The notes under the pieces were generated by a model. That model saw only the letters and a list, made by a program, of their open reading frames with translations, was not told the origin of the DNA and did no database searches. Below, one piece after another: positions 9,001 to 56,360 of a stretch of 64,000 nucleotides of DNA. The stretch is from contig NIVC01001190.1 of NCBI GenBank assembly GCA_002269645.1, forward strand, positions 124,001 through 188,000, given 5' to 3'. Numbering within the stretch: the stretch's first letter is position 1; each line of letters begins with the position of its first letter. Source of the DNA: Macrostomum lignano. Its lineage: Eukaryota. A program made the position numbers and the translations under genes.

Positions 9001-9201
9001 ATCTAGGAGAGTTGTTAGCTGTTCCCAATTTTCTTCTTCATAATATTTTGAAGACAGTGGGGGTATATAGGAGTTTATTAAGGTGAAGTTTTTGTTTTTA
9101 TCCTTTTTGTGTTCAAAATTTAGCGTCAAGAAGTTTTTATAATGTTTGAATGATTCTGTAACATTGTATTGTGTATCTAGTGACTTTTTGTAAGCTGTCA
9201 A
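6067..9201 (-). CDS. LINE ORF2: apurinic endonuclease (C-terminal part), reverse transcriptase, C-terminal Cys/His finger
   Basis: APE motifs INSYIPP, LIGDFNAH, SVIDLCF, SNHNQI; RT motifs KAPGHD, NYRGI, QYGF..HST, FVDYEKAFDS, GVLQGNPLS, LFADD, FKYLG; CKMC...HYLTECP at the end. Confidence 0.95.
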   Translation of the reverse strand: MTAYKKSLDTQYNVTESFKHYKNFLTLNFEHKKDKNKNFTLINSYIPPLSSKYYEEENWEQLTTLLDAYHSEENIFLIGDFNAHINNTSYIDLNSIYNTRAKNISLTRQSQDKKNCKNGRLLNQITDSYNLHLINGRSLSDTNGEFTFLSKSGSSVIDLCFVSTSLLQHLEDFKVKNHTYFSNHNQIVLSLSSEFTEEITETKQATNNSKTRYRVLKKSDKPNLQQEKHINNFANDLKNMNDKITNLDIQNPAFINELSRKVRQIQNNITVEIKNPLCSTLPRFLKDLRNAARHACRRYKTFPTPNNLSSKVQLKKAYEKKLTTWKFETTLCADNMINQAFIQNDTKQLWNLLKTPNPSNNRVTIDEKFVIHFQNLVTEQDSSIRLSYNLHLDNPILADLEDFNAPFTKEEVIKHIKKLKTNKAPGHDKVYVETLKYLENELADLLCSLFNEALKQGTFPTSWITNTLHPIYKNKGSSADPNNYRGICIQPILGKLFCQIIKSRLENLAYANNLISKYQYGFKPNHSTIDQCFNLYNIINQSIYNKEELFIGFVDYEKAFDSLNQPTLWCKTDNQGIKGQMMELIKNMHKNACFILKKDDDDDETQPIPISKGVLQGNPLSTILFELYIDDIVEYLELSSARRSLMRSAFPLILLFADDQAILAKNKDELQDTFTTMENYCKQNYLKVNASKTKFMQGNTRQKNDTESIATKIYYDNQEIEEVNEFKYLGIIFEPKNSFKKCIEHQTKQGYTAMFSLLHRVKNTSLDITLIRRLFNALVTPVIIYGCELWGPLATMSDTKAIDNIQLKFYKYLLNLPKFASNSVISSELELTPISQRIAKTYLIYWLKIRHKKLCQTTLEIFYSSTGQKNPWKMNVLKKLESIDLKALTEDKLSQSFNNEKYLVKKHLKIHRERELSQKLENQQHIKLYKNAYLYKKICRPDLSDYFACTFRNKKFLTTLLKLKCEITPNFFSQEPCKMCGARNGSDILHYLTECPQTEEIRKKYFCQYLLNSNQIHKIGYATNEKRVRKELTGVAKIYKVMNS

Positions 9202-14200: not shown

Positions 14201-15950
14201 GCCGGATAAACACCCCCTTCCGACATTCGAGCAGCTGTCTGCGGAGTTTGCCGGCTCCAAGATCTTCACGAAGCTGGACCTCAACTCGTCATAGCTGCAG
14301 CTGGAACTCGCAGAAGAGTCTCGCAACCTGACGACCTTCATCACGGACGAAGGGCTCTATAGGTACACCCACGTCTGCTTCGGGATGAACAGCGCGCCGG
14401 CGGCCTTCCAGAAGGTGCTGTCGAAGGTGCTCGAGAAGGTCAAGGGAGTAGTGCACTACATCGACGACATCGTCGTGCATGCGGTGACACGGGCCGAGCA
14501 CGACAAAGCGGTGACTGCGGTCCTTGACCGGCTCAAGGAGCACAACATCACACTGAACCTGGAAAAGTGTCAGTGGGCAAGGGACAGCGTCGAGTTCCTC
14601 GGCTACGTAGTCAGCGGTGACGGACTTCGTCCAATGGCGTCCAACGTGGAGGCCATCACCAGCATCCCGTGCCCGACCAGCCAGAAGGAAGTGGCGTCGT
14701 TCCTGGGAATGGTCAAGTTCTACGGCAATTTTCTGGACAACCTGTCAACCGTGGCGGAGCCGCTGATGCAGCTGCTGCGCAAGGACGTTCCGTGGCAATG
14801 GACGGCAATTCAACAGCAGGCCTTCGACACCCTGAAGTCGATGGTCGTGTCGCCGCCATGCCTGAGGTTCTTCGACACCAAGCACCGGACTGTTGTCGCT
14901 TGTGACAGCTCGGCTACTGCGATAGGCGCAGTACTCGCCCAAGAGGATGATCAAGGCCAGTGTCGACCTGTCGCCTTCGCCTCCAGGACCCTGAATCCCG
15001 CTGAACGGAAGTACTCCGCGTCAGAGCCAGAAGCTCTGGCCTGCATCTTCGCGTGTGAACGGTGGAACTACTTCCTGTTCGGCCGAAAGTTCGAGCTCCA
15101 GACGGACCATCGAGCTCTGACTACCCTGCTCAGCGGATCAGGCATCGGGCACAGGCCGCTGCGACTCCATCGTTGGGCCGACAGACTGATGGCGTACGAC
15201 TTCGACGTCAAGTACATCGCAGGCAAGAGCAACATCGTGCCCGACTTCCTGTCCAGGTGCCACTCAGCGGAGGGGACGGTGAAGAACGATGACGAGATAG
15301 GCATTAATGCAGTGCTGCTGTCAGGAGCCCTTAGTATAGTGTCCGTGGAGCAGTTGGCAGCCGCAACCCAGGCCGACGAACTGCTTCAGCAGGTGCTCCA
15401 GAAAGTCCAAGAAGGCTGGCCTGAGTCGTCAAAGAAGCTGGCGGACTCACTGGTGCCATACTGGAGGGTACGCGACGAGCTGTCAACATGGAACAGCGGC
15501 AGCTGCCTGGCCAAGGGCACGCGCGCGGTCATTCCTCAGGCGCTGCAGGAGACTGTGCTCAACCTGGCTCACTTCGGACACATGGGCATCAGCCGGATGA
15601 AACAGCACTGCAGAGAAGCTGTCTGGTGGCCAAACTTCGACCGCGACGTCGAATCCTTCGTAAAAAATTGCGAGCCCTGCGCCGTGAGCGAGAAATCTTT
15701 CAAGCCGCCAAAGGTGCTGCTGACCCCGACAAGGTGGCCATCCCAGCCGTGGAGCGAGATACAGATCGACATCTTCGGCGAACTCACGGCACCGGCGCCC
15801 CAGACGTGCCGCTACATCCTGGTGGTACACGACCTGCACTCAAAGTGGCCAGAGTTCTCCTGCCTCTCGTCGGTCACGTCATCGCAAGTGATCAGCGTGC
15901 TGAAGTCTTTGTTCGCCAGGTGGGGACTGCCAAAGGTCATCAGGAAGGAA
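14201..15950 (+). pseudogene. Ty3/Gypsy (Mag-like) pol fragment: RT, RNase H, N-terminal half of integrase
   Basis: PLPTFEQL...KLDLNSS*LQL (TAG at 14292 replaces Tyr), FGMNSAPAAFQK, HYIDD, CDSSATAIGAVL, TDHRAL, HFGHMG, CEPC, QIDIFG; homology stops at WGLPKVIR before the second catalytic Asp. No LTRs seen. Confidence 0.93.
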
Positions 15951-16441
15951 GTTAAGGAAATTAATTATTATTTTATTTGTTATTTTTACCAGAAAATTTT
16001 TTGTCCATTTTTTCTTCCTGCCGCCTCTGCCGCCGCGTCCGCCCGTGGTGCTTACGAGTACTTGTCGTTACTCCTGAAATGTTGGTTTACCAAAAGATTA
16101 TACATTCTGTAACATAATATATGATTACATCATAATTGCTATAAGCTAAAGCTGATGTCTTGCTAATTGGGAGTCTGCTTTTGGGGTTTGTTTGCCTCAT
16201 AAAAAAAGAAACACAAACTGAATATGTCAGTTTCAAGGTGCCGGGTTGAATCACTCATAATGACCAATGGGTTTGTATTTTGCGTTTTTTTCGAAAGTCC
16301 GGTACCCTGAGCCAATCGGAGAGACTGACAAGTATGGACTTTCCGCAAGGCACGCGTTGCCCCCCCCCTCCCCCAGAGACCTGCGAGAATGCCAGAAAAC
16401 AACTCGTAGTTGCACAGCGCGTATTTAAGTTGCGGGTTTAC

Positions 16442-24087: not shown

Positions 24088-27083
24088 TTCTTCTTCTTCT
24101 TCTTCTTCAGGGCTCGTCCGGGTCGGGATTAGCCGAAATGGACGGGGGCATGCGCCCCATGCTACGCAGGAGGCCGAAAAGGGCGGTCGGGGACTCCAAC
24201 AAGTCCTCGGCCGCGCGGATGCCGTGCAGGGCGCGGTAGCGGTCCCCGCGAGGGCAGGCGAGCAGGATGTGCCTGACTGTGTCGAGTTCGCCGCAGTCAG
24301 GGCAGTTGGCTGTCTCGGTGAGGCCCATCTGATGGAGCGAGCTGTTGTTGATGGTGCTGGCTCCGGCTCGCAGCTGATTGAGGAGGACTTGGCGCTGCCG
24401 GGTCATGGTGGCGGGTGGCTGCTTAAAGGCGCCCACGACCGCAAGATCGAGGGACCTGCGGCTGCGCCGGGCGGCGGCTTTGGCGGTGCTGAGTGGAAGC
24501 TCGACGTGGCGTTGCTCTAGTTGGGCGGCACGGGAAGCCGCCTGATCCGCCGCCTCGTTGCCGGCGATTCCGCAATGTGCGGGGACCCAGGCGAAGGAGG
24601 GGGGGGCGACCGTCGGCCTTCAGGCTCATGATCGAGTCCCAGCAAGCTGCTGCGGTCGGATCGGTCTGGTCGATGGGACCGGCGAGCAGGGCGGTGAGGG
24701 CGCTGAGGCTGTCGGTGGCGATCCAGTGCGGCTCGGCGGCGCGGTCAGCTTGCAGGTATTTGAGCGCCTCTTGGATGGCAACGAGTTCGGCGGTGTAACT
24801 GCTGCAGAGGGCGCCTGCGGCGGCCGGAAGTTCGACGTTGTTGTTCTCGTCGCGCACAATGATAGCGGCCCCGCCACCATTCTTGTAGCCTTCCGTCACG
24901 GAACCGTCGGTCCAGATCGTGTTGGACTCGCAGAGAGTCGCGATGATGTCGGTCGCGTGGTGGGCTCTGATGTCTGGCGGCATGTCGCGGTGGGTCCTGA
25001 GGCTGGCTCGAAGGTCGAAGATGATGTCGCTGGCGCCGGTGGTTCTCCAGGGCTCAACGCCGAGAGGCGGCGGGGCGCGTGGGAACTGGTCCAGGGCGGC
25101 GGCGCACTCAAGCTCGAGGGCGGCGCGGCGCCAGCAGCCACGGTGCGGGCGGAGGGCGTCTTTCTGGCATCCAGGTTGGTTGACGGCGGGCGTGGCATCC
25201 GGGCTGTTGCGGGTTTGGCGCTGCAGGGCTTCGTAGCTGCGGTTCTTGAGGCGTGGTCGTGTGACACGTTCGGCAGTTTCGCGAGCCGGGGTGCCCTCCG
25301 GGAGGCGCAGGAGGCGTTCTCGGAGATTGCACGCGCGTTCGACAGCAACGTGGCTGATAGGTGGGAGTCCGGCGGTAGATAGCAGTTCCTTGGCCTCGGT
25401 GGGGCGGATACATCCAGTGATGAGGCGGGCGCAGGCATTTTGTTGGCGTTCGACTGCTAGTCGGGTGCTGGGTGCTGATCCGCACATCCAGATGCCGCTG
25501 CCATAGTCAGCGATGGCGCGGATGGTGGCGGTGTACACCGTGCGGAGGATGTCCTGCGTGGCGCCACTTGACCGGTGTGCGATCGCTTGGAGGGGGCGAC
25601 GTCGGGCCGCCATGCGTCTGCAGACTTCTTTAGCGTGCTTGGTGAAGGTGAGCTGGTCGTCCAGTTTGATGCCGAGGAAGGTCGGGTTAGGGTCGCTTTG
25701 CAGAGGTTCGCCTTTAAGAGTCAGCTGGAGCGGAATCTTGCCTCGCGTCTCGCTTGGGCTCAAGGAGAAGGTGGTGTAGCTGCATTTGCTGGTACTGAGC
25801 TCCATGTGCCAGTTCTCGCACCAGGTGGCCAGAGCCTCGTTCGCAGGCTGGAGGATGGCTTCGCAGTCCTTCAGACTGGGCGCCGTGGCGAGGATGGCGC
25901 TGTCGTCGGCGTAGAGGCTCACTTTGGATCGCGGAGAGGCTTGAAGGATGTCGCTTGCCAGGTCGTCAATGTAGACCAGCCAGAGGAGGGGAGCCAGGAC
26001 AGAGCCTTGTGGCAAGCCCTCTTTGAAAATGCGCTCGCGGGATAGGCAGTTGTTGACACGGACGCGGGCTCGGCGGTCGCTGATGAAGCTGTTCGTCCAG
26101 CGGAGTGCGCAGGGTGTAATGCATTTCAGGCTGAGCTTGTAGATGTTACCCTTCCTCCAGACCTTGTCATAGGCTCGGGACATGTCGTAGACCCCCAGGG
26201 CGCTGCGCTGGGGTGGTAGCTCTTCAAGGCCGTCGAAAATGTCTTGCGTGATGCGCGCAATCTGTTCTTCACACGACCGACCGCTGCGGAAACCGGCCTG
26301 GACGTTGCTGAGGCGGCCGCGCTGTTCAAGGTGGTGCCTGAGGCGCTTCTGTACCAGTCTTTCGGCGACCTTGGCGATACAGCTGGTGAGGGCGATGGGC
26401 CTGAAGCTGCTTGGGTCAGAGGCCGGTTTGCCGCGCTTGGGTATTGGGATGATAATGGCCCGTTTCCACTGGTGCGGGCAGCAACCGGAGAGCCACGACT
26501 TGTTGATAAGGTCGAGGAGGCGGCTTTCAGTGCACGGCGGGAGGTGTTTCAGCATCTCGTTGCTGACCCCATCTGCGCCGGGGCTTTTCCCAGATTTGAG
26601 CGCGCGCAGAGCGCTCTGCAGTTCGCTGCCGCTGAACGGGCTGCAAAGGCCGGATTTCTGATTGCCAGGGCAGCAAATCTGTTTCATCGCCTTGTGGGCG
26701 AGCCGGGCAATGGGGCGGTCCTCCTTGCGTCGGTGATTTCGAGAAACTTCGGCGTAGATGTTGCAGAAGAGATTGGCTTTTTCGCTCGGGGTGGTAGCCG
26801 TTCGCTGGCGGGATCCAGGTTTGGCAGGAGTGCTCAGGGCCGCATTGGCGGGGGGAGGCGGCGGCTCTCCTCGGAGCGAGCGGGCGAGGGCAAAGAGGTC
26901 GCTGTTTAGGTTGAGTTCGCCGATCTTTTGTTGCCAGTGCTGTTGTTTGGCGGAGTTGATGGTGTCGGCCGCGGTCTTGCGGGCGCGGTGGAAGGCGTTG
27001 ATGTCGTGCTCGGACTTGCTCTGCTCAGCGGTGTGTCGCGCACGGTTGCGTTCGTCGCAGGCGTGTTGGCAGGCGTCCGTCCA
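24088..27083 (-). mobile_element. 5'-truncated non-LTR retrotransposon with RT, RNase H and Cys/His finger (I/Ingi/R1 group)
   Basis: RT (KSPGADGV, SFRPIAL, QAGFRSGRS, DMSRAYDKV, GLPQGSVLAP, LYADD, FLG); RNase H (IWTDGS, SSYTAELVAI, TDSLS, then FAWVPAHCGIAGNEAAD after a frameshift in the G run ~24599-24606); CPDC...HILLACP; (GAA)7 tail overlapping the stop; 11-bp direct repeat gctgttgcggc at 24077-24087 and 27084-27094; no APE domain. Confidence 0.92.
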
Positions 27084-27252
27084 GCTGTTGCGGCTGTTGC
27101 GGCTGCTGCGGCTGCTGCGGCTGCTGCGGCTGCTGCGGCTGCGGGGCGAGCGACCCCTGCACGATGGCCGGCAGGTTACGTAGGTCGCCCCCCCGCAGCT
27201 CCACCCCGTGGGTCCATAGGACGCAGCCGGCACCCACGCGCCAGTACATCCT
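27084..27252 (-). CDS. 5' half of candidate exon 2
   Basis: Acceptor ttcattttactccag (AG at 27254-27253); reads RMYWRVGAGCVLWTHGVELRGGDLRNLPAIVQGSLAPQ(PQQ)n. Confidence 0.55.
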
Positions 27253-31542: not shown

Positions 31543-33251
31543 CTATTCTATTTCTCGACTCAAATTTCTCGACTCATAGTAAGCGCACGTGCAGACAAAA
31601 CTTTTAAGTTGTCGAGCTGTTCTTGGTCTTGGCCAGGTCTGGATAGCCTCGATCTTCGCCGGATCGGTCTTGATTCCGTCCTTAGTAACTAGATGTCCCA
31701 GGTAGTTTAGACTTGCCCGAAATAAATGGCACTTCTTGCCCTTGAGCTTTAGGTTTGCGTCTTGAACTCGCTTAAATACTTCTTCCATATGCTGAAGATG
31801 GTCATTAAATTTCTTAGAATAGACGATTACGTCACCCAGATAATCTATTGCACTTTTATAGGCGATCCCGTTGAGCACAGCATTCATGAGGCGCATGAAA
31901 CTGGCTGGTGCTGAACTTAGTCCCATAGGCATATTGTAGGCGAATTGTCCGCGGCGAAAGCAGTCAGATCTTGATCCTCTGGACGCAGTGGAATCTGATA
32001 GTAGCCGCTGTTCAAGTCAAACGTGCTGAATAGCTGGCTTCCTTCGAGGCTAGCGAACGCTTCCTGGATGTTCGGTATCGGGTACGGAAAGTACTCGCAC
32101 TTTTGGTTCAGACTCCTGAAGTCTTGTACAATTCTTAGGCTGCCGTCCTTCTTCGGGATGATCACCAGCGGGGTGTTGTAGCTGGAGAAGCTCGGTCGGG
32201 TCACGCCTTTGGCCAGCAGATCGTCGAGTAACTGGTCCACCTTGGGTAGCAGGTGCGGCGGGATCCTTCGCGTTGGGAGATGCATCGGATCTTTGTCCTT
32301 CAGTACGATGTTGTGGGTGACCAGATGAGTTCGGCCGAGATCGTGTGGCCCCTGAGAGAAGATGGTCTGGTACTTTCTCAATAGCTCGATGACTTGAGCG
32401 CGCTGGTCACTGGACAGATCCTCGCTGATATCGATCTCCTTAATCCAAGCATCGGGATCCTCGTCTTGGATTTGATTGACAGAGTCTTCTGATTTCAGCA
32501 GCGGGAAGAAATGTAGCTCGGGCAGTCTGATTGGTCTAGCAATCCCGACTAGGGCATTCGCTCGCACTTTGATGGCTGTAGTGCCACGGTTGATCATTTC
32601 GATAGCGCCTTCTCCATTAGCCATGGAGATCAAGGCAGGCGCGGCGTCCAGGTGCTGCACATCTTCTTCACGCCGAGCCGGTTTCAGTGCAGTGCCGTCC
32701 TTGAAAAACAGCATTCCGGCGGCGAGGTCCAGTGATGTGCTGTACTTCTCTAGGAACTCGAAACCCAGAATGTTGTCATGCGATCCTTTCGCTAGCAGAA
32801 ACTTAACTGTAGGCTCGAAATTGCCAATTTTCACTTTAATAGATAGCTGACCTGCCATTTGAATAGGCTCTCCATTGTAAGTCACGATACGTTGAAGGCA
32901 GGGTTCGATTTGGCCACGCAGGGTCGGGTCATCGGTACATATTCGGTGCCAGGTGCTGAATCCTAGGACTTCGCACTTGGAGCCGGTGTCAAGCAGAAAA
33001 GCAAAATAACGACCCTGAATCTCACCAGTTAGAAACGGATCCCTTCGAGGTCGCTTGGGTGCAGAGTTCTGTACAGGTGCGGCGGAGGCGGTTTCAGCAG
33101 TGGCCTGCTGAGCGACTAAAGTCCTCGGCGGGGACTTCAGTGCTGGCTCGGCTGCTGGATGGCGCTGCCCCCGATGGCGCGTCCAGCCGTCCCGTTTCCC
33201 GAGCTGCCGTTGCGCTGGGGCGCGGTGCTGGCCGACCGCCGGTGCGGGCAC
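31543..33251 (-). pseudogene. Ty3/Gypsy pol (protease + RT), frameshifted near 31945 and truncated before RNase H
   Basis: FLLDTGS protease; YPIPNIQE, FSTFDLNSGYYQI; resumes as GQFAYNMPMGLSSAPASF; catalytic YLDD reads YLGD; homology ends at ~31565 at a short tandem duplication (atttctcgactca x2). Confidence 0.92.
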
Positions 33252-34522
33252 TCATCTGCGCGGTGCTCGCGGTTGCACCTGTAACACATGGCGCTCTGTC
33301 GCCGCAGCTGATAGGGCGGCGGGCGTGAACTCGACTGCGGCTGCCGCTGCTGATGACGTTGACCTCCTGCTGGCGGCGTCTTTGGCGGCGGATTGCTGCC
33401 GTCTCCTGGTTGCTGAAGTCGATGGAACGGTTGCTGCGGCACTATTCGTGTGCCGGGTGTCGTAAATTGGGCGCTTCCGTCGGCGCTGCGGCGAGGAGTC
33501 GGGGGTACCAAACATCTGGAGCGCTGGCCCCACGAGTCCCGTGGCTGATGGCGAGGTTCCCATGGCTCCGGGGTGTCGTTATCGCGCGATCCCCGCGAGT
33601 AGAACTCTCGCATCTCATTACTCAAAGTCTCAAGTAGGCGTCGCTGCTCTTGCAGAGTCTCGGCCTGTTGTTCCATCACCTCACGCAACCAGTTTTCCTC
33701 GGGCCGAGATGACTTGGCGTCGTGTTGCACCCCAGTGGGCGTCTGACTGTCGTCATTCTCCAGGACCCGGACATGTCTCGCTGCTGGCGGCGGTGCTACA
33801 CGCTGAGCCAGACTAGCAGCTGTCTCCAGGCGTAGCACGGCCCTCCTCGCTGCGGTCAGATTCGGCGGTCGCACCAGGATGAGCTGTTCTCGGGCCGACT
33901 GAGCAATCCACACTCCCACAGTGAATTGATCCACCAGTTCAGCCTGCTTCTGAACCGGGGTAAAATTCGGGAACGCTCGATCGGCCAGAGCAATTAGTCG
34001 GTCGCCGTAGTCGTCAACATTCTCGTTCTTGCCCTGCTGGCAGCTTCGGAACTGCTCCCGGTACTCCAGCGTATCGGCAACATGCGTAAAGCGTTCAGAT
34101 AATCTCTTTTTGAACTCACCAAACGTCAGATTATCCGGCAACTCCATCCTAACGACTGCGGGGTAGGCTGTGGCGATGTCCAAATTCACGAGGACTTCCG
34201 CCTTCATTCGTCTGTCGTCAACGATCCCGTTGAGCTCGCATCGCTCTTCGAGAGCCTTGATCCAGACGTCGAATTCCTGGTTGGGCGTGTACCGCTGAAT
34301 CTTGACCGGTTTCGGCGCTGGAGCCCGATCCGGCTGCTGGGGCTGCTGGTACACATGATGGTGGTGTTGCGGCTGACCCAGGCTGGTCTGCTCCAGTCGC
34401 CGGCGCACTTCTTCGGTCACCGCGCGAATCATTTCGTCGTAGGTAGGTCTAGTTGTTGAGTTGTCGGGGCCTGCGGCGTCAGCTGTCGCATCCGCAGCCG
34501 TTGGACTAGTAGTTGAGGCCAT
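33137..34522 (-). CDS. Ty3/Gypsy Gag
   Basis: Open frame from MASTTSPT; capsid-like FDVWIKALEE...FKKRLSERF...QQGKNENVDDY; knuckle CYRCNREHRADECP; lies between PBS and pol. Confidence 0.85.
   Translation of the reverse strand: MASTTSPTAADATADAAGPDNSTTRPTYDEMIRAVTEEVRRRLEQTSLGQPQHHHHVYQQPQQPDRAPAPKPVKIQRYTPNQEFDVWIKALEERCELNGIVDDRRMKAEVLVNLDIATAYPAVVRMELPDNLTFGEFKKRLSERFTHVADTLEYREQFRSCQQGKNENVDDYGDRLIALADRAFPNFTPVQKQAELVDQFTVGVWIAQSAREQLILVRPPNLTAARRAVLRLETAASLAQRVAPPPAARHVRVLENDDSQTPTGVQHDAKSSRPEENWLREVMEQQAETLQEQRRLLETLSNEMREFYSRGSRDNDTPEPWEPRHQPRDSWGQRSRCLVPPTPRRSADGSAQFTTPGTRIVPQQPFHRLQQPGDGSNPPPKTPPAGGQRHQQRQPQSSSRPPPYQLRRQSAMCYRCNREHRADECPHRRSASTAPQRNGSSGNGTAGRAIGGSAIQQPSQH
33150..33200 (-). 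promoter_or_regulatory. Candidate -1 ribosomal frameshift signal between gag and pol
   Basis: G GGA AAC (plus strand 33194-33200) is in X XXY YYZ phase in gag; the -1 frame is the pol ORF (GKRDGW); gctgga...tccagc stem begins ~6 nt downstream. Confidence 0.65.
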
Positions 34523-34927
34523 AGCGTAGATTCTGAACGACTCGTCGAATGGGTTTTGACGTCTCGTTATCCCACTTAGCTGACCACCAGTGAGGTGGGG
34601 GTGGAGAAGAATTTGGGGTTCTTGGAATTCTTGAGTTTTTAAATTGGCTGACACCAGTGATGTGTGGCGGATTCCTTGTTTGAATTGCCGCCGGCGTGGT
34701 TGAAACACGAATAAAGCCGGAAAATCGCGCAGACGAATCACCACGAATTTCTTCTCCTTTTACTCCGACAGCCGGGGTCCTCAAATTCCGGGGGGGGGGG
34801 AGGGTAGTCCTGATCGTAGCAGAGCGGTCGTTAGAGCGGCACGGTCGTTCAGATGGTAGACACCGGAGATGGACACCGTAAATTAATGTGTCGAATTGCA
34901 GAGCTGATTACTGTCAGTAGGGTAGTT

Positions 34928-39019: not shown

Positions 39020-39751
39020 TATGGCTGAGGGGCAGATGAGAGTAGAAAGAAGAAGGAATAGACGATTCGAAGAGAGGAGAGGCGACAGAGGGGATAAAAG
39101 AAAAGATAAAAGATGATAGGAGAGATGAGGGGGTGAGGATGATGAGAGAGAAGGAGAGAAGAGGGGAGAGAAGAAAAGCGAGATGAGAGAGCAGAGAGCT
39201 GCAGATGAGAAGAGAGAGGAGACAGCAGAGAGGAGAGCAGAGAGGAAACAGGTGAAAGAAGAGACGAGAGAGTAAAGGGAAGAGAGAAGAGATAAAGATA
39301 CATCTCTACATCTCTAAGGTTGTAGAGATGAGAGAGGTGGAAGGAGAGATGAGAAATGAGAGATGAGAGATAACGGAGAGAGGAGAGTGGAGTGAGAGGA
39401 CAGAGGGAGACAGAGTATAGACAAGGGAAGAGAAGAGAAAAGGAGAAAGGAGAAAGGAAAGTGAGGAGTCAAAAGAGGGGAAAGAAAAGAGTACAGAGGA
39501 GAGAGGTGGGAGAGCATATAAGACAGAGATGCCAGATTAAAGAGGGGGATGAGAGAGCAGAGACGAGAGTGAACAGATAAAAGATGGGAGAGTAGAGAGA
39601 ACAGAGGAGAGGTTACAGAGACGAGAGGAGAGAGGAGAGACAAAGGTAGAGAAGTGCATGAGGAGAGAGGAGAGGAAAGAGGAGAATGGAGAGGGGAGAG
39701 AGTAGAGAGAGGAGGAGAGATAAGAGAGAAAGACAGAGAAGAGAGAAAGAC

Positions 39752-39833
<82 letters not shown>

Positions 39834-40195
39834 ACAGAGAGAAATGAGAAGAGATAAGAGAGAAAAGATAAAAGAAGAGAAAGGAAAGATGAGAGAGCAA
39901 AGACGAAAGAGAAAAGAGTAGCGGAGAGAGTTAAGAGAAGAGAGAAAAGAATAGAGAGGAGAAGGAAGAGAAGAGAAGAGATAAGAGGGGGAGAGAGGAG
40001 AGAGGAGAGGGGGAGAGAGGAGAGAGAAAATGAAAAAGTAGAGAGGAGAGAAAAGAGTAGAGAGAAGAGACAAGAGATGAGATAAGAGAGATGAAAGAGA
40101 AGAGAGATGAGGGAAGATACGAGAGAAGAGGGGAGAGAGGAGAGAGGAGAGAGGAAAGACGAGGGATGAGAGAGAAGAAAGGAACCAGAAGAGGC
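39020..40195. repeat. GA-rich low-complexity tract with a pure (GA)n core (~39760-39818)
   Basis: Read directly from the sequence. Confidence 0.9.
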
Positions 40196-41002
40196 GATAG
40201 AAATTTTAAAGGATCCAAGGGACATAGGGAGAGTCAGGGAGAGGCCAGAGTTTGCCAATACATGTTTTAGAGTCAGACAGACATTACCTGACATTCTGTG
40301 CAGTACCCCAGCTAACAATATCAATGTTTGCCTCAAATCCTTACACGAATGTGTCCATTTTATGTCTACCTCTATCCTACTAACTATTAACAAGTTTTTG
40401 TTTGTGTATGGCCTTAGATTTCAGAATTTCTGGGGATTCTCAGTTCCGGGGATTGGAATTCCCCGGGTTCAAAATCGGCGGGTTTCAACAGCTTGTATAT
40501 TATAAATGAAATTAATAAGTTAAACTTATGTTATGATTAAAAACTTTATAAATGCTGCAAAATTAACATGCTAAAAATGATAATTTTTGCTTATTTTACA
40601 TTGTAGATAAAGTTCAAGGTGAAATTCAAGAAATTTTAACTAGTTTTTTGAAACAAACAGTAGTCTAAGCATGACTTCATGAGCCTTATGATTTTTGTTT
40701 GTTTATTATTGAATAAGCTGCATGGCAGTCTGAAGAAACTTAATGTTATCTATATCTGAAATATCTATATCTGAAAATCTATACTTAGTGCACATAGTCA
40801 GCAGAGCCTTATATCTTTAAGTGGCACTAGGCCCAGGGCAAAGGGGCACATGTGTCATGTACCTTCATAAGCTGCATTTTGAGGCCTAAAATTAAAAAGC
40901 ACAAAAAATCACTGTGTTAACTCATTTTCTAGGGAATGGGACATTACATAAAAAAATTATGTCAAATAGTCTTATTTAGTTATGAACTTCTTAAAAGTAG
41001 TT

Positions 41003-41411: not shown

Positions 41412-42197
41412 GGCTCATTCCATATAAGCATGGTCGTAACATGACAGGTTATTTTTACTTATAAAATGAAATCTAATAATAGAATATACTAAACCAATAT
41501 TTTAAATGAAAGATTATTTTGTCTATAATATATTTATAGAGTTTCATATAGATATCATCATTAGTATAGATGCTATTAAACCTTAAATGACACTTATGGT
41601 CGTAACGATAGGATTTTTGACATATAGAAACTAAAAGGTAAAAGTCTTATAACATTTTTCATTTTTGATATTTTGCAATACATTTTTAAAATTTGACTAA
41701 GAACATCTTTAGAAATCATACTCTTTTATTAGAATATATAAACTCAAAAGGCAACAAAGATACAAAAGAAAAGGCAGCCTTATGGTCGTAACATTATGGT
41801 CGTAACATATTTTTTTCTGTCAATTCAGTAACTTTGAGGTACTAATACATTAAAAATATAATAGATTATTTGGTCACCAATGCTTTTATCTGATGATGCA
41901 AGTACTATACTTTTATCTATAGTTTGTTTCAACCTTCAAAAGCTTTCTATTTGTTTTTAAAAGGTACAAAATCTTAATGATGTCTTTTGCTTCGAAAAAT
42001 GTCCAAATTTTTACAAAAATGACTTTTTGCCAATTGATAACATACTAATTCAACATTTTACCATTCCTTTATTCTTAGATTGTATATATTGCACAATATA
42101 AACATTTGGTAAAAAAATAGGCTAATTAGGCAATGGCAAGCAAAAATATTGACTTTTTTCTGTTTTCCAAATATGTCAATCTTATATGGAATGAGCC
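41412..42197. mobile_element. 786-bp MITE
   Basis: Perfect 17-bp TIR ggctcattccatataag / cttatatggaatgagcc, flanked by tagg on both sides; four internal atggtcgtaac motifs. Confidence 0.88.
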
Positions 42198-42845
42198 TAG
42201 GGACTTAATGAGATAAATAGAAATGTGACCAATTGGGAAAAATTTTTTAACAATAGGCACATGAATTGATTGATTGAGTTTTTGAATAGTTAGCAAAGTA
42301 TTTGCTTTGCAATGTTTATCATTGGTAGATTTATTTATATTTATCTATATATTTAAATGTACTAGAGTGGTTCTTATTTAGCAAAGGTTTGAATTTCAAA
42401 TTGGATGGCCCTTATTTCTATTCCCAACAGCAGTAAACTGAAATTCCTAAAATATGAAGTCAATCAAAACTAATTAAAACAGTCTTTATCATCCGATAAT
42501 TGCATTTTTTTGTTTTAAAATGACGTTAAAAAATCTGTTTTTTCTTTGTTATTTGCATGGGCATATTTTGGTGAATACCTTTCTCGGACATTGGGAAGGA
42601 CCTGTAAGTGGGCAACGAGAAAATCCCTTTTCTTGTTTTCCCTAAGTCCCATTGCTTTTGAGGCCACCCCCTAAAATTAACGAACAGTTCTAGGAAAGGA
42701 CTTTGAAAATGCACAAAGAATAAATGATGGATAAAACAAACTCAGGTAAAAGGGAAAGCTAATATGCATCAGTAGGATTTTTAAAGAAATCAGCTTTGCT
42801 AATTGCTTTTCATGACGCCTGCAGCCCCGAGCTAAAGAACTTAGC

Positions 42846-43515
42846 ATGGGCCAGAAAAGCTCTCACCTGAGTATGCTGCACGTGTCCCTAATGGACCTGC
42901 GGGGTTACAAAGTGAAAGTGTTAGAACTGCCGCCCAGTCAGCTAACTACTGCCATACTACGCCAAACTAACAAATACTTATTGCGCTTACATCCAGAGAA
43001 AATGGACTTAGTTGGCCGTCACGATGGCATTCAAGTCTGCGAGATCAGTTACTTTCATATTCGAGCACTTAACCAGCTGGGTAGAGTTGTTATTATTAGT
43101 CTGGGCCGGTCCAGCTGCTTTGGTGAAGGTAAAATGACTTTACGCTGCAGTAAAACTCTATACAGCAGCCTCATCTCGTCCAGCTTCAAAGGTAGAGCTC
43201 AACGACTGTCCACCGAGGTGTCCTTTCTGTCGTCTTCAAATTCGTCGTCATCGTCTTATCGACGGCAGAGACTATCGGCGCCGATTATGACACAACAACA
43301 GCAGGCCTCGCCAATGCTGGCTCCGACATCGTCGGTTGCGCAAGATCGACTGACCAGCATCTCCGCTTCGAGTTTTGAGACTCTGACGACAACTCCGCCG
43401 TCGACGCGTTGTCGAATAACTGACATCGGCCAGACTAGCCGACGCAGCAGCAACAGACAAAATGGCAATGATGAGACTGCAGAGGATTTGGACGGCTATT
43501 TACTGATGATGCCTG
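42846..43515 (+). CDS. Exon 1 of an IRS/DOK/FRS2-family docking protein (myristoylation motif + IRS-type PTB)
   Basis: MGQKSS fits MGxxxS; KYLLRL...HIRALNQLGRVVIISLGRSSCFGEG matches the IRS-PTB GRxxxxGxG pattern; Ser-rich linker; DGYLLMMP (YxxM); donor g|gttagt at 43516. Confidence 0.8.
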
Positions 43516-43561
43516 GTTAGTTTTTTATCTGTTATTGTTTGCCTGTTAAACTAATAATGTC

Positions 43562-43791
43562 AATGATAATAATAATTGATTACACCTGCCCCAATCGGGC
43601 CAGATGTGCAACTGACAGCTAAAGGCTGCTTACGGCTGTTCTCTCCAGAAAATGGGGGAGGGGGTCGCCACACACCCTCAATTACCCCAGCTAATGCTAC
43701 AAGGACACAAATTGTTCCATTGGGATCGGGAATTGAACCCCCGACGTTCAAGTCGTAAATCCGACGCTCTGACCACTAGGCTGTAAACCCC
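43562..43791 (-). mobile_element. tRNA-derived SINE, antisense within the docking-gene intron
   Basis: A box tagtggtcagagc, B box ggttcaattcc, then gtgtccttg body motif and an (ATT)n-like tail. Confidence 0.75.
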
Positions 43792-43991
43792 TCACTATGC
43801 TTTAAGGATTTTTTAAAGACGTGCTGTCATTGTCACATTTTGAGTAACCTGTAAACATTGATTCTGTAGACTGTTGCAACATCTGTGCCTCAGAGAGGTT
43901 CAGTAGTGTGTAAAGAGTATTGTAGAGACTAAATGGCAGTGTCATTCCAGCGCTTAAAACGGTCTCAAAAATGACTCAAAAATTTTCGCAG

Positions 43992-44194
43992 GCAGCAGAC
44001 GTGCTTCTACATCTGCCACATCAGCCGGCAGTTCAGCAACTCCGTCAGGCCGTCACAGTGCAGCAGCAGCAGCAGTCGGCCTCCCCGCTGTCATCGCAGA
44101 CGAATACGTTCTGCCTAGTTCGGGTAGGTATGCGCAGATAGACTGGTCTCAGGTGATGCAGGACTCGCTTCAGTATCTAGAGCCTCTTTATTGA
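43992..44194 (+). CDS. Exon 2 of the docking protein (Tyr-motif tail)
   Basis: Acceptor aattttcgcag; phase 1 matches exon 1; reads GSRRASTS...DEYVLPSSGRYAQIDWSQVMQDSLQYLEPLY*, stop at 44192-44194. Confidence 0.75.
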
Positions 44195-44384
44195 AACAAG
44201 CGAAGGAGGTAAAGCTTAGCTAATTAAACTAGCACTTCAACATAAAACAAGCGACAATTTTAAGTACATTACTCCCTGAGAATTAGGACAGGGAGAGAAT
44301 TCGGCACGCTTTGAAGAGCAGGTCGCGTCTGCAAGAATTGGGACACGAGTCTCAACACGAACCTCTCTGAGGCACAGATGTATC

Positions 44385-45050
44385 CCACACACACACTCAA
44401 CCCTAGAATCCCATGCTCTTGAGATCCCACACACACAGCCCTAGAATCCCATACTCTTGAGATCCCACACACAGCCCTAGAATCCCATACTCTTGAGATC
44501 CCACACACACAGCCCTAGAATCCCATACTCTTGAGATCCCACACACACAGCCCCAGAATCCCATACTCTTGAGATCCCACACACACAGCCCCAGAATCCC
44601 ATACTCTTGAGATCCCACACACACACTCAACCCTAGAATCCCATACTCTTGAGATCCCACACACACACTCAACCCTAGAATCCCATACTCTTGAGATCCC
44701 ACACACACACTCAACCCTAGAATCCCATACTCTTGAGATCCCACACACACACTCAACCCTAGAATCCCATACTCTTGAGATCCCACACACACACTCAACC
44801 CTAGAATCCCATACTCTTGAGATCCCACACACACACTCAACCCTAGAATCCCATACTCTTGAGATCCCACACACACACTCAACCCTAGAATCCCATACTC
44901 TTGAGATCCCACACACACACTCAACCCTAGAATCCCATGCTCTTGAGATCCTACACACACAGCCCTAGACCCCATACTCTTAAGACCCAAACATAGCCCC
45001 AGAATCCCATACTCGATTTTGAGATCCCACACCAAAACACAGCCCTAGAA
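44385..45050. repeat. ~36-40-bp minisatellite (ccctagaatcccatactcttgagatccca(ca)n)
   Basis: Read directly; the (CA)n inside the unit varies in length. Confidence 0.95.
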
Positions 45051-46184
45051 TCCTCTAAAATATCTAAAATGCGTCATCAGGGGATTAGAGAAGAGGATTA
45101 AAGAAAATTTGTCGCATTTTCCTGATTTCAACCCGTCTCGTCTCTCTCTCTCATGTCTCCCGCTCATCACATTGTCGTTTTTGCAACACCCAAAAAAGCC
45201 CACTTCTCTTGTTTAGAAAAAGCACAATTTTTTTAACTCCCAAATTCACGCGTTAATCCATTTTTCCTGTACGGAGGAAGACCATTGTAAAATTACTGGG
45301 CCATCCAGCTGGGCGCACCCAGATAACATTTAAAGTTATAGTTATTTAATAATTGACTTTTTAACTTTTAATGTACGCAACAAAAGTACATGCTGAACTA
45401 TTTTGCGATTGTCGACATTTTCTCTACTATACTACTATTGGTATTTTCATATATTAACCTGCCGTTTGTGTTTACGCGATTTGGCATTTATAAAATTTGT
45501 GTGTTTATGCGTCAGTTTCTGTTGCTACCGAACCCATGTTTCATTTCTATCGGTCTTGTTCATCGTAAAAAAACTGATTAAGTCTCTCTGCTGCAGCTTG
45601 TCTTCTCCAATAATTGCGTCAAATCCCCAACTCTTATTAGCTATGCCGTCAACTGTCGCGAATTAACCTATTTTTTTATTTTCATTCGTTTTCGATTTTG
45701 TCTGTTTCTTTGTTTTTGTTGATTTGTTTGTTTGTTTACTTTTTGTTTGTCAAAACTGTCTCTGTTGCGCTGTTTGAATTTCATATGCAATTAGCTTAGG
45801 TTCGGCCTGTACTTTATAAACAGAAAAGTACAATTAGGTCTATGATCTTGATACTCATAAGCTATGTGAGTAGGGTGAGGCTGTGCGCTTCCCCATCAAT
45901 ACACGAGCGTAGTTTTGTCCATTCAGTTTTATAGTTAACTGCAGGTAAAGTAAAAAATTGCAAAGCAACAATAGTCTTAGCCATCATTTCCTGTCGCTCA
46001 TTTTTAAATGATAATATATATATATGCATTCAAAATACATTGTGCATGTTTATGCACAAATAAACTCGCATCGGCTCTGAACGGACGTTCGGCTTGTCGC
46101 TTTTTTTACTACAAACCTAACTGTGTTAGCGCCTTACTGGCTTTTCATTTACCAGCCTCCCAGTTTGCTGGGCCAGCCTCCCAG

Positions 46185-47390
46185 ATCCTTAGTTTCTGTG
46201 ACGGCCTCCCAGATCCTCAGTTGGTAGGGCAGTCAGCCTCCCAGATCCTCAGTTGGTAGGGCAGTCAGCCTCCCAGATCCTCAGTTGGTAGGGCAGTCAG
46301 CCTCCCAGATCCTCAGTTGGTAGGGCAGTCAGCCTCCCAGATCCTCAGTTGGTAGGGCAGTCAGCCTCCCAGATCCTCAGTTGGTAGGGCAGTCAGCCTC
46401 CCAGATCCTCAATTGGTAGGGCAGTCAGCCTCCCAGATCCTCACTTGGTAGGATAGTCAGCCTCCCAGATCCTTAGTTGGTAGGGCAGTCAGCCTCCCAG
46501 ATCCTCACTTGGTAGGATAGTCAGCCTCCCAGATCCTCAGTTGGTAGGGCAGTCAGCCTCCCAGATCCTTAGTTGGTAGGGCAGTCAGCCTCCCAGATCC
46601 TCACTTGGTAGGATAGTCAGCCTCCCAGATCCTCAGTTGGTAGGGCAGTCAGCCTCCCAGATCCTCACTTGGTAGGGCATTCAGCCTCCCAGATCCTCAC
46701 TTGGTAGGGACAGGGTAGTCAGCCTCCCAGATCCTCAGTTGGTAGGGCAGTCAGCCTCCCAGATCCTCACTTGGTAGGGCAGTCAGCCTCCCAGATCCTC
46801 ACTTGGTAGGGACAGGGTAGTCAGCCTCCCAGATCCTCAGTTGGTAGGGCAGTCAGCCTCCCAGATCCTCACTTGGTAGGGCAGTCAGCCTCCCAGATCC
46901 TCACTTGGTAGGGACAGGGCAGTCATCCTCACAGATCCTCAGTTGGTAGGGCAGTCAGCCTCCCAGATCCTCACTTGGTAGGATAGTCAGCCTCCCAGAT
47001 CCTCAGTTGGTAGGGCAGTCAGCCTCCCAGATCCTCACTTGGTAGGATAGTCAGCCTCCCAGATCCTCACTTGGTAGGGCAGTCAGCCTCCCAGATCCTC
47101 ACTTGGTAGGATAGTCAGCCTCCCAGATCCTCACTTGGTGGGGCAGTCAGCCTCCCAGATCCTTAGTTGGTAGGATAGTCAGCCTCCCAGATCCTCAGTT
47201 GGTAGGGCAGTCAGCCTCCCAGATCCTTAGTTGGTAGGGCAGTCAGCCTCCCAGATCCTCACTTGGTAGGATAGTCAGCCTCCCAGATCCTCAGTTGGTA
47301 GGATAGTCAGCCTCCCAGATCCTTAGTTGGTAGGGCAGTCAGCCTCCCAGATCCTCACTTGGTAGGATAGTCAGCCTCCCAGATCCTCAG
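46185..47390. repeat. 32-bp minisatellite (cagcctcccagatcctcagttggtagggcagt) x ~37
   Basis: Read directly from the sequence. Confidence 0.95.
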
Positions 47391-48290
47391 TTTAGTTGGA
47401 CTGCATTTCTTTTCATTTTGATTAAGCAGTTTAAGGCCAGACAATATTCCTTTTATTAATAAGCTCTCGTATTCATGTGTAACACTACATTACACGCAGC
47501 TCAGTGACGTCACGTACATGTACCCCAGCAAATTCGTGCGCTGTTTTATCTGCCACTGTATAAATACAGTCCATTTTGACTGTGTCGGTCCAGGCCAGGG
47601 GTTCCCACGTGCAGCCGGGGTGCCTCTTTGTGCATGTTGGGGGGGGGGGTTCGCTGCACTTCTTCCGTCGAGTTCTCGAGTCCCCGACACCTGTTTAGAT
47701 CCCATTTAGTTGGAGCCTGCCCACCGCGTGTGTCATTGCATTCGCTGCTGCAGGAACGGTTATATGCCTGCCATTCAGTAGTTTCAGCAAGCATATAATT
47801 CAATAAAATACTGCAATGACTGCTATTGCACATATATGCTAATATAAGAACAAAGCGATGAGACACACATGTATAACTCAGTTAACAGTGTAAGAAAATC
47901 CAACTGACTCATATCAAAACTGATTACTGCAGCAGCCGCCATAGTTTAGATCATTTCCACCAAATTAACTTCACGTGATTGAATTAACTTCACATGATCT
48001 TCTTCACAAGGGTCTTCTCGCACACACACGAAAACACACACGAAATAGGCCACCAAAGTGCCTCTTTTGTGCACCTCGCTCACCTTTTGTGCCTCTGCAG
48101 GTGCATAACTTTTCCAACGGGAAGGAGTAGGGTGGGTAGAGTAGAGAGCGGATTCTGAACGGGATAAGAGGAGGCGGTATAAAGGTCGTGTCAACATATT
48201 GTGCACCACGTGTCATTTTCTATTTTTGCTTTTGATATAAATAAATCTAGTGAAAATGCTCGTATTTACGCTCGCACGCTCGCAATGTTG

Positions 48291-49842
48291 TTTTATTGTG
48301 CACAAAACATGAAGCTTTGGTTTTTAATCATTTTTTACTTTAGGCTGGAGCGGAGATAAGCGGAGGTGGATCGTTGGTGGCTAGATGGGCAGTTGGGTGG
48401 CTAGGTGGGGAGTTGGGTGGCTAGGTGGGCAGTTGGGTGGCTAGGTGGGCAGTTGGGTGGCTAGGTGGGCAGTTGGGTGGCTAGGTGGGGAGTTGGGTGG
48501 CTAGGTGGGGAGTTGTGTGGCTAGGTGGGGAGTTGGGTGGCTAGGTGGGGAGTTGGGTGGCTAGGTGGGCAGCTGGGTGGCTAGGTGGGCAGTTGGGTGG
48601 CTAGGTGGGCAGTTGGGTGGCTAGGTGGGGAGTTGGGTGGCTAGGTGGGGAGTTGTGTGGCTAGGTGGGCAGTTGGGTGGCTAGGTGGGGAGTTGTGTGG
48701 CTAGGTGGGCAGTTGGGTGGCTAGGTGGGCAGTTGGGTGGCTAGGTGGGGAGTTGGGTGGCTAGGTGGGGAGTTGTGTGGCTAGGTGGGGAGTTGGGTGG
48801 CTAGGTGGGCAGTTGGGTGGCTAGGTGGGGAGTTGGGTGGCTAGGTGGGCAGTTGGGTGGCTAGGTGGGCAGTTGGGTGGCTAGGTGGGCAGTTGGGTGG
48901 CTAGGTGGGGAGTTGTGTGGCTAGGTGGGCAGTTGGGTGGCTAGGTGGGCAGTTGGGTGGCTAGGTGGGGAGTTGGGTGGCTAGGTGGGGAGTTGTGTGG
49001 CTAGGTGGGGAGTTGGGTGGCTAGGTGGGCAGTTGGGTGGCTAGGTGGGCAGTTGGGTGGCTAGGTGGGGAGTTGGGTGGCTAGGTGGGCAGTTGGGTGG
49101 CTAGGTGGGGAGTTGGGTGGCTAGGTGGGCAGTTGGGTGGCTAGGTGGGGAGTTGGGTGGCTAGGTGGGGAGTTGGGTGGCTAGGTGGGGAGTTGTGTGG
49201 CTAGGTGGGGAGTTGACTAGATGTTGGCTAGTTTTTTATTTTTTGTGGGATAATCATTTCTGTTCACAAAATGATTCCAGGGCTGTCTATTGTCGCGCCA
49301 GTCTGCTACTGAGCTGGCAGAAGTTGAGTGGTGCCCCTTGCACCATTTAAGCTGCTGCCAAAATTTGCTGGCCAATACGTGCCGTAGGAAACATTGTCCA
49401 AGAGACAATGATTTCTACGCAATCTGCAATAGGCCAGGCTGCTTTTGGGGCAAAATTCATGGTGCGAGGGGCCAGTTGTGCCAGCTCCAGCGCCAGCTCC
49501 CCGCTGTTCCGCTGGCAAGGTGCCGAGCCTTGCCACGCTGGCCAGTCTGGCAACACGCAGCAGCGGCCCGCCGCCACTGCACTTGTGCAGTTGTGGTTTG
49601 GGAAAGGTCTTGGTCACTGACCTGTAAAAACGTGATCCCTTCTGAACGTTAAAACGGCCCTTTTCAGGGCCACCAAATTCGCGATTCTTGCGTTTAGTGA
49701 ACTCTTTTAACTCCGCCATTGCCGGTCCCCAGCCCGGATGAAAAAGGAGGAGGGAAAGAAAATATACACATGCTCACGTTCGTGTCACTGTTTTTCTGTT
49801 TCCTGTTTTGATAAAACTGTCTTGCCATTTTCCACTTGAAAT
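48291..49842 (-). mobile_element. Repeat element; inverted copy at 63033-64000
   Basis: Both flanks of the 20-bp array match the reverse complement of 63033-63660 and 63900-64000 with few mismatches; carries the ORF/exon MAELKEFTKRKNREFGGPEKGRFNVQKGSRFY followed by ag|gtcagt. Confidence 0.85.
48376..49216. repeat. 20-bp G-rich minisatellite (ggtggctaggtggg(c/g)agttg) x ~42
   Basis: Exact 20-bp register; ~13 copies in the inverted paralog (63660-63915). Confidence 0.97.
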
Positions 49843-55412: not shown

Positions 55413-56360
55413 TCAGTCCTTGTAGATTTTCACGCCCGCCCGAGCAGCGCGGGGGTGCGGGCGCAGCGCCATGGGGGAGGCGGGTGGATCTCGGGCCGCC
55501 TCGCCCGAAGCTCTCGGTGCAGCGGTCTGCGTTTGGGCGCCGGCGTCGGCCAAGTCGGGGCTGACGACTTTGACCGCCGTGCAGTGCCGCCAGCAGGTCG
55601 TGCCGTCCCGGCGTAGCAGCAGCGAGTTGCCGGCCACCCGCTGGACTGTCCAGGCACCGCTCTCGAATGGCGTCTGCGTCTTGCTGGCACCGACCCGCCG
55701 TCGTAGCACCGAGTCGCCGACCTGGACGTCGTGCCGCCGTGGTCGCCTTTTTGCGTCCGCGTGCTGCTTCATCGCCGCCTTGGCGCCAGCGTCGGCTTCT
55801 CTCAGCCGCTGCTCGTTGATGCGGACTCGCTGGGACGGCCGGGCGGCGGGGATGATGTCGTTTGGCCGCCGGCCCATCAGCAGCTCGGCTGGTGCGCGCC
55901 CGGTGGCCGTGTGCGGCGTGTTTCTGTAGGCCAGCAGCCACTCGTCCAGAGCGGCCCTCCAGTCCCGCCGCTCCTCGATGGCTGCTCGCACGACTTTGTT
56001 GATGGAGCGGTTCAGTCGCTCTGTCATGCCGTTGGCCGCTGGGTAGTAGGGCGTGATGAGGCGGTGCTTGATCCCGTAGCTCGCCAGGAACCGGCCGAAC
56101 TCCTTGGACGAGAAAGGTGGTCCATTATCTGTCACGAGCTCCTGTGGCATCCCGAAGCGGGCGAACATCTCTCGCAGGCGGGGAATCAATGCCTCGGCCG
56201 TCGTCGTCTGCATGAGCTGCACCTCCGGAAACCTTGAGTAGCGGTCCACGCACACCAGCAGCATGTTGTTGTTGTTGGGTCCCACGAAATCGGCGCCGAT
56301 CGACAGCCAGGCGCCCGCGGGGATCGGCGTCGGCTGCAGAGGCGTGGCCCAACTGCACAA
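55413..56360 (-). pseudogene. Ty3/Gypsy (Mag-like) integrase core and C-terminus, 5'-truncated
   Basis: IGADFVGP, VDRYSRFPEV, ELVTDNGPPFSS, PYYPAANGMTERLN (D,D,E intact), YRNTPHTATG. Confidence 0.93.

Follow-up and report, generated by a model that had tools for sequence, protein, structure and literature searches.

Does the small gene at positions 42846–44194 of the Macrostomum lignano DNA analysed here encode a docking protein built for compactness, or is it a piece of something longer? The DNA in question, hereafter the window, is a 64-kb stretch, and all coordinates are counted from its first letter. An earlier note had read the product as a lineage-specific adaptor for receptor tyrosine kinases, in which an FRS2-like lipid anchor is joined to a phosphotyrosine-binding (PTB) domain and an IRS-like YxxM motif, and from which the pleckstrin homology (PH) domain is missing. 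The gene exists as predicted, with two exons and 290 residues, and GenBank lists its product as a hypothetical protein. Nonetheless, alignment with its paralogues shows that it is a 1.4-kb partial duplicate made at the DNA level, extending from 77 nt before the ATG into exon 2 with the intron kept. What interest there is lies with its longer parent, most likely a very divergent docking protein of the FRS2 kind.

The window matched contig NIVC01001190.1 of assembly Mlig_3_7 at 100% identity across 7361 nt. A 224-aa open reading frame (ORF) occupies 42846–43520, and its stop codon TAG (43518–43520) lies inside a splice donor, G/GTTAGT, with exon 1 ending at 43515 in phase 1, while the acceptor ttttcgcag/G opens exon 2 at 43992. 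Joining both exons adds the 66 residues that had been foreseen and gives a coding sequence (CDS) of 873 nt and 290 aa, with the C-terminus QYLEPLY and the stop at 44194. In fact, PAA70995.1 (BOX15_Mlig029991g1, 294 aa, labelled “partial”) consists of KELS followed by precisely these 290 residues, and its CDS (window 42834–44194) has the same ATG, 43515/43992 junction and 44194 stop. Annotation of M. lignano was based on RNA-seq-guided transcript assembly, with trans-splicing and poly(A) evidence fixing the gene boundaries (PMC5730564). The 43515/43992 junction, singled out beforehand for checking, is therefore transcript-supported, and the equivalent junction recurs in each of the five models of this gene family.

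It had also been suggested that an acceptor at 42824 might add upstream exons. An in-frame AG does exist at 42823–42824, so that an exon could begin at 42825, but it is used by no annotated model and an in-frame TGA at 42813–42815 is kept in the paralogues. The five transcript-based models begin 3, 6, 12 or 30 nt before the ATG, or within the CDS, and an upstream coding exon is found in none of them. No PH domain was matched by Pfam in the window product, and neither PH nor another relevant Pfam match was found in the same-strand open stretches of at least 60 aa within 8 kb upstream. The protein thus lacks PH as claimed, yet its novelty was overstated, since short myristoylated Frs2-related proteins have already been described in flatworms (PMC7260276). 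As for the MGxxxS motif, MGQKSS opens the product of all five copies with Gly2 kept, and the MG start, followed by a small residue at position 6, is the true N-terminus in the family models, which have no upstream exon. The motif fits PROSITE pattern PS00008, the N-myristoylation consensus, and lipidation is predicted.

The parentage of the gene became apparent from the family to which it belongs. Five copies are present in the M. lignano assembly, three of them long (L001 and L004, 411 aa; L005, 405 aa) and two short, namely the window gene and a sister on NIVC01002101.1 (L002) whose DNA is ~98% identical to it. Short and long copies can be aligned only from window position 42769 to 44181, intron included, at ~86% identity; the rest of the window has no match to the 21.8-kb paralogous locus, and the long copies adjoin a RIBIOP_C gene, whereas the window copy does not. 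By these alignments, 48 residues have gone from the interior of the window copy and 76 from its C-terminus, and it has gained a novel end of four codons. The internal loss comprises 144 nt (including ALYQNLPSP) immediately past YVLP at 44116; the terminal one begins where homology stops, after CAGTATCTAGA at 44181, the end of the long protein (DSSSS...KYVSIDSARTQAIRDLIVDK...MTDI) giving way to E-P-L-Y-stop. No trace of the long copies’ C-terminus was found by tblastn anywhere in the window. What had looked like a compact architecture of ~290 aa is instead that of a 3′-truncated partial duplicate of a 405–411-aa gene. That the short copy arose by retroposition was considered and rejected, as the intron is kept and the truncation lies at the 3′ end.

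Some observations on the copies may be recorded here. In UniProt entry A0A1I8HGW5 (P0004; L001 ~11400–11545), the 144-nt segment is spliced out by GT/AG within exon 2, so that the long paralogues may contain an in-frame “exitron”. Precise intron loss was considered for the corresponding gap in the window copy and rejected, the gap being one base off the GT/AG of P0004, and it was called an in-frame indel. Another UniProt entry for a long paralogue, A0A1I8HDW7 (P0005), reads exon 2 (window 43971–44141, + strand) in a different frame (TDVLLHLAHQPAVQRLRQ...) under the name “BESS domain-containing protein”; it probably reflects wrong splicing in a model made on an older assembly. A short way upstream of the gene, ~785 nt at window 41412–42198 are missing from the sister contig, an indel between near-identical copies. 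Moreover, a perfect 23-nt inverted repeat (43879–43901 and 44359–44381) brackets exon 2, its first arm being ancestral intron sequence and its second ending exactly at the start of a 42-nt satellite. This repeat could be the footprint of the truncating rearrangement, by template switching.

The copies also differ in how they have been changing. By the Nei–Gojobori method, comparisons between long copies gave synonymous to non-synonymous changes of 13:1, 18:9 and 19:8, with non-synonymous to synonymous rate ratios (dN/dS) of 0.02–0.16, those between short and long copies ~36:41 (dN/dS ~0.33), and the one between both short copies 1:3 (dN/dS ~1), where one of the non-synonymous changes is a nonsense mutation. 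The long form is clearly, on these ratios, a constrained and functional gene under strong purifying selection. The short copies appear to be under relaxed constraint, because the sister copy already has a nonsense codon, with CAG changed to TAG at Q272 (window 44135–44137) and a product of 271 aa. From this codon and the apparent relaxation, it follows that the window copy is more likely a decaying duplicate, at best decoy-like, than a purpose-built compact adaptor, even though the relaxed constraint of the short copies is based on four differences only, which counts against this reading.

Tail tyrosines of the window product occur only in YRRQ, YLLM, YVLP, YAQI, YLEP and as the terminal residue, none of them in a YxN context, while the long paralogues have one YxN site (YQNL). 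All four motifs on which the earlier note relied are thus present, and YLLM and YVLP are kept in every copy; however, YLEP (residues 285–288) straddles the rearrangement breakpoint and was made by it, and YAQI, which matches a Shp2-type pattern, is cut by the stop codon of the sister. It could still be argued that the 290-aa product functions as a lineage-specific compact adaptor, in which a myristoyl anchor, a PTB domain and YxxM, YxxP, YAxI and YLEP motifs merge FRS2-like anchoring with IRS-like PI3K recruitment, given that its ORF is intact and annotated from transcripts and that MGQKSS, YLLM and YVLP are conserved. We consider this very unlikely: the protein derives by truncation, which accounts for its compactness, from a longer and strongly constrained gene, one of its motifs is a breakpoint artefact and another is destroyed in the sister, the changes that separate both short copies appear neutral, the PTB domain is unconfirmed, and YLLM is the only YxxM in the product.

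A different role would be that of a natural decoy. The short copy has its anchor, receptor-binding region, YLLM and YVLP still, and is devoid of the YxN (Grb2-type) site and of the conserved C-terminal box; it might therefore vie with the long form for receptors and lower Ras/MAPK output. Such a role would suit the retention of the 5′ three-quarters with ORF and intron intact, the annotation of the copy as transcribed, and the fact that the lost segments are precisely those with YQNLPSP and YVSID...RT. On the other hand, the further nonsense codon in the sister copy, about one synonymous to three non-synonymous changes, and co-duplication of just 77 nt of upstream sequence leave us giving this idea little credence, and a decaying duplicate continues to be the reading that we prefer for the window copy.

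If the window copy is a truncated duplicate, what is the parent? The earlier note had read a PTB domain, by eye, into its N-terminal region. Comparison with human FRS2 returned a faint resemblance. BLASTP against its residues 1–133 (N-terminal sequence confirmed against PDB 1XR0) gave, at E = 0.014 as a single comparison, a colinear alignment of 84 residues with 21% identity that begins at residue 21 in both proteins. A hidden Markov model (HMM) of the FRS2 PTB reached E = 0.03 in hmmsearch --max, i.e. with filters off, and the profile Smith–Waterman score exceeded 97.7% of 1000 shuffles (p = 0.023). In the alignment, Y69, R73, G87-R88, G93-x-G95 and C101 fall at equal spacing on Y59, R63, G77-R78, G83-x-G85 and C91 of FRS2, R63 and R78 being the phosphotyrosine-contacting arginines of the SNT-1 PTB. 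Taken together, these similarities weakly suggest a resemblance to the FRS2 PTB, as a signal that is faint and consistent.

The tail of the long paralogues provided a second line of comparison. Three of its motifs stand in the order of FRS2, with ALYQNLPSP facing NYENLPSLP of the human protein, RYAQIDW facing NYIQVDL, and KYVSIDSARTQAIRDL facing LYAVIDIERTAAMSNL (the human C-terminal sequence was verified), and a colinear ungapped-match test gave p = 0.035 over 20,000 shuffles with motif windows chosen post hoc. The window copy keeps only the middle one of the three. The FRS2 C-terminal box (YAVID..RTAAMSNLQKALPRDDG...) is absent from the window, and YVSIDSARTQAIRDL of the long paralogues obtained no score on the HMM of the vertebrate C-terminus.

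Several results weigh against an FRS2-like identity. Neither the window ORF nor the long paralogues (P0002, P0003) matched any Pfam family at E ≤ 10, whereas in the same run PF02174 recognised the N-terminus of a vertebrate FRS2 (P0006) at 1.9e-19 and a copepod FRS2-like protein (P0101) at 2.4e-18. The earlier note had named failure of the PTB profile among the outcomes that would refute its reading; taken to the letter, this outcome has occurred, though the faint similarity to the FRS2 PTB remains. No matches were obtained among PDB sequences with phmmer (single sequence) or hmmsearch (profile), and phmmer with the N-terminal 130 aa against 1.84 billion representative proteins retrieved the paralogue only. 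Alignment to the FRS2 PTB by hhalign covered 19 columns at 0.2% probability. AlphaFold2 models had a predicted local distance difference test (pLDDT) score of 32 from the single sequence and 35 from the paralogue alignment and were unusable; FRS2 sequences were left out of that alignment because seeding it with them would bias it towards a PTB fold and render the test circular. A Foldseek search with both low-pLDDT models gave nothing at E ≤ 0.001, its matches being noise. Moreover, most residues that are invariant in the FRS2 PTB (W57, RRYG, FSFES, RRC) are not kept, an HMM built from vertebrate FRS2 C-termini gave no significant match to the long paralogues, and the tail-motif test was devised with the motifs already in view.

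In the databases searched, the family is, as far as similarity can be detected, without relatives outside M. lignano, and we found no literature naming these genes, or FRS2 in Macrostomum. Perhaps, then, it is an orphan family restricted to Macrostomum, its N-terminal region being no PTB, its likeness to FRS2 due to chance and its role, possibly as a signalling scaffold, membrane-associated in some other way and unrelated to FRS2, Dok and IRS. Two large searches without homologues outside the species, the want of both Pfam and PDB matches, the hhalign probability and positive similarity statistics that all lie at only p = 0.01–0.04 would fit such an origin. Nonetheless, we regard it as rather unlikely, since several independent weak signals agree, i.e. 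the MG start, the same start residue as FRS2, the R...GR....GxG.....C spacing and the colinear tail motifs, and since the Frs2-related proteins of flatworms are known to be short and atypical. Because of these four signals and the flatworm literature (PMC7260276), the family is probably, in our judgement, a very divergent FRS2-like docking protein, which is the likeliest of the identities considered. As the PTB profile that defines FRS2 was not matched, the family is not filed as a proven FRS2 member; the claim is that it would work like FRS2, not that it is FRS2.

The long, parent form (405–411 aa) is made up of an N-terminal myristoylation consensus, a beta-rich region of ~95 residues from residue ~20, a long Ser/Thr/Ala-rich tail, judged disordered by its composition, and a few tyrosine motifs with acidic residues or prolines around them (YLLM, YVLP, YQNLPSP, YAQIDW and YVSID...RT.A). 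In the FRS2-like reading, the lipid anchor would keep the protein at the membrane, where the PTB-like region may bind a receptor tyrosine kinase and the tyrosines, once phosphorylated, may recruit SH2 proteins. The window copy, a partial one, has landed in a region rich in retroelements and satellites. A more daring variant, which we find improbable, is a docking protein specific to Macrostomum, myristoylated, with a binding module beyond the reach of profiles or of a new fold, recruiting PI3K directly via YLLM, in which case the truncated copy would be a dominant-negative decoy for receptor tyrosine kinases.

The long paralogues bear on the question of how FGF receptors signal in flatworms, where Dof is missing and only short atypical Frs2-related proteins have been reported (PMC7260276). 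Stem cells and regeneration are studied in M. lignano as a transgenic model. Should the long paralogues be its equivalent of FRS2, they would offer a handle on receptor tyrosine kinase signalling in neoblasts and would reveal the extent to which a PTB may diverge without loss of the docking architecture. It is the long paralogues, rather than the window locus, that carry the interest, the window copy being an ordinary truncated duplicate. It serves mainly as a caution that, where a genome is repeat-rich and recently duplicated, a tidy “compact” ORF may turn out to be a truncated duplicate, and that reading motifs on such a copy can mislead, as with YLEP.

Features of the gene and of its surroundings are collected in Table 1. 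The tRNA-like element of the intron is also found in the paralogue intron and thus predates the duplication; another copy lies at L001:333-415. The retroelement ORFs are of several kinds, with endonuclease and reverse transcriptase (long interspersed nuclear element-like), with reverse transcriptase–RNase H–integrase or pieces of gag–protease–reverse transcriptase (long terminal repeat element-like), and with an integrase core. Among the long ORFs scanned besides the gene studied, all were retroelement-related or had no Pfam match, and the remainder of what was examined consists of repeats.

Table 1. Position of the gene, its parts and neighbouring elements in the window
Feature	Position	Strand	Remarks
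Upstream stretch common to long paralogues; very short 5′ leader	42769..42845	+	Homology to L001 starts at 42769; annotated partial CDS from 42834
Coding exon 1 (residues 1–223 and first base of codon 224)	42846..43515	+	Same as GenBank models P0145, P0001
MGQKSSH, N-myristoylation consensus (Gly2, Ser6, no Pro7)	42846..42866	+	Identical in 5/5 genomic copies
Candidate, unproven IRS-type PTB-like region, residues 19–112	42900..43181	+	Weak FRS2 similarity; no profile match
YLLM, residues 218–221 (Y218), acidic context EDLDGYLLMMP; candidate pYxxM site	43497..43508	+	Invariant in all copies; SH2 binding predicted
Intron, phase 1, GT...AG, 476 nt	43516..43991	+	Jukes–Cantor distance ~0.07 to intron of long paralogue
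Degenerate tRNA-like element in intron (probably head of a short interspersed nuclear element)	43721..43790	-	Rfam tRNA 17.2 bits, gathering score 29; none by ARAGORN
Coding exon 2 (66 codons and TGA)	43992..44194	+	Sequence and GenBank model
YVLP, residues 262–265 (Y262)	44105..44116	+	Conserved in all copies; 144-nt gap directly after
YAQI, residues 270–273 (Y270)	44129..44140	+	Q272 codon (44135–44137) is TAG in sister copy
New 3′ end: last base of Glu codon, Pro-Leu-Tyr, stop; makes “YLEP”	44182..44194	+	Homology to long copies ends at 44181
ATTAAA, possible polyadenylation signal, 29 nt past stop	44223..44228	+	Pattern match only
Tandem array, 42-nt unit, ~14 copies	44382-45053		
Tandem array, 32-nt unit, ~37 copies	46204-47392		
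Tandem array, 20-nt unit, 42 copies	48376-49215		
GA-rich microsatellite block	39300-40400		Yields long spurious Glu/Arg-rich ORFs
Retroelement ORF	6067-9201	-	
Retroelement ORF	14385-16112	+	
Retroelement ORF	24423-27233	-	
Retroelement ORF	31917-34744	-	
Retroelement ORF	55413-56360	-	

It remains to set the Macrostomum protein beside the known docking proteins. With Dok, for which YxxP motifs are typical, it may share a tail rich in Tyr and Pro behind an IRS-type PTB, but it has no PH domain, no PTB recognisable by profile and no sequence match; in the PDB search, an FRS2 query reached the Dok PTBs at 1e-9 to 1e-11, whereas the Macrostomum protein matched nothing. With IRS1-4 and Chico it has in common one YxxM (YLLM) in an acidic context and, possibly, an IRS-type PTB. 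Unlike these, it has neither a PH domain nor an upstream exon, a lipid-anchor motif standing in place of the PH, carries a single YxxM where they have many, and is about a quarter of their size.

Nearest to it are FRS2 and FRS3 (SNT-1/2). The protein falls below every IRS-type PTB profile threshold and most FRS2-invariant residues of the PTB are replaced; one YxN in the long form and zero in the window copy compare with the several YxN (Grb2) sites and C-terminal Y[IV]x[VIL] (Shp2) sites expected, and the window copy is without the entire C-terminal quarter. The Macrostomum protein has a YxxM, a motif that FRS2 is not known to have; FRS2 recruits PI3K via Grb2–Gab1. In flatworms, myristoylated “atypical short Frs2-related proteins” have been reported (Clonorchis FRS3, Echinococcus FRS2) and Dof is absent (PMC7260276). 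Like FRS2 and FRS3, the Macrostomum family has the N-terminal MGxxxS consensus and no PH domain, then a region of ~95 residues from about residue 20 that is weakly colinear with the FRS2 PTB and has two Arg, GxG and Cys at equal spacing, and finally a long tail, disordered by composition, with tyrosine motifs, among which YQNLPSP, RYAQIDW and YVSIDSARTQAIRDL of the long paralogues are ordered as YENLPSLP, NYIQVDL and YAVIDIERTAAMSNL are in FRS2.

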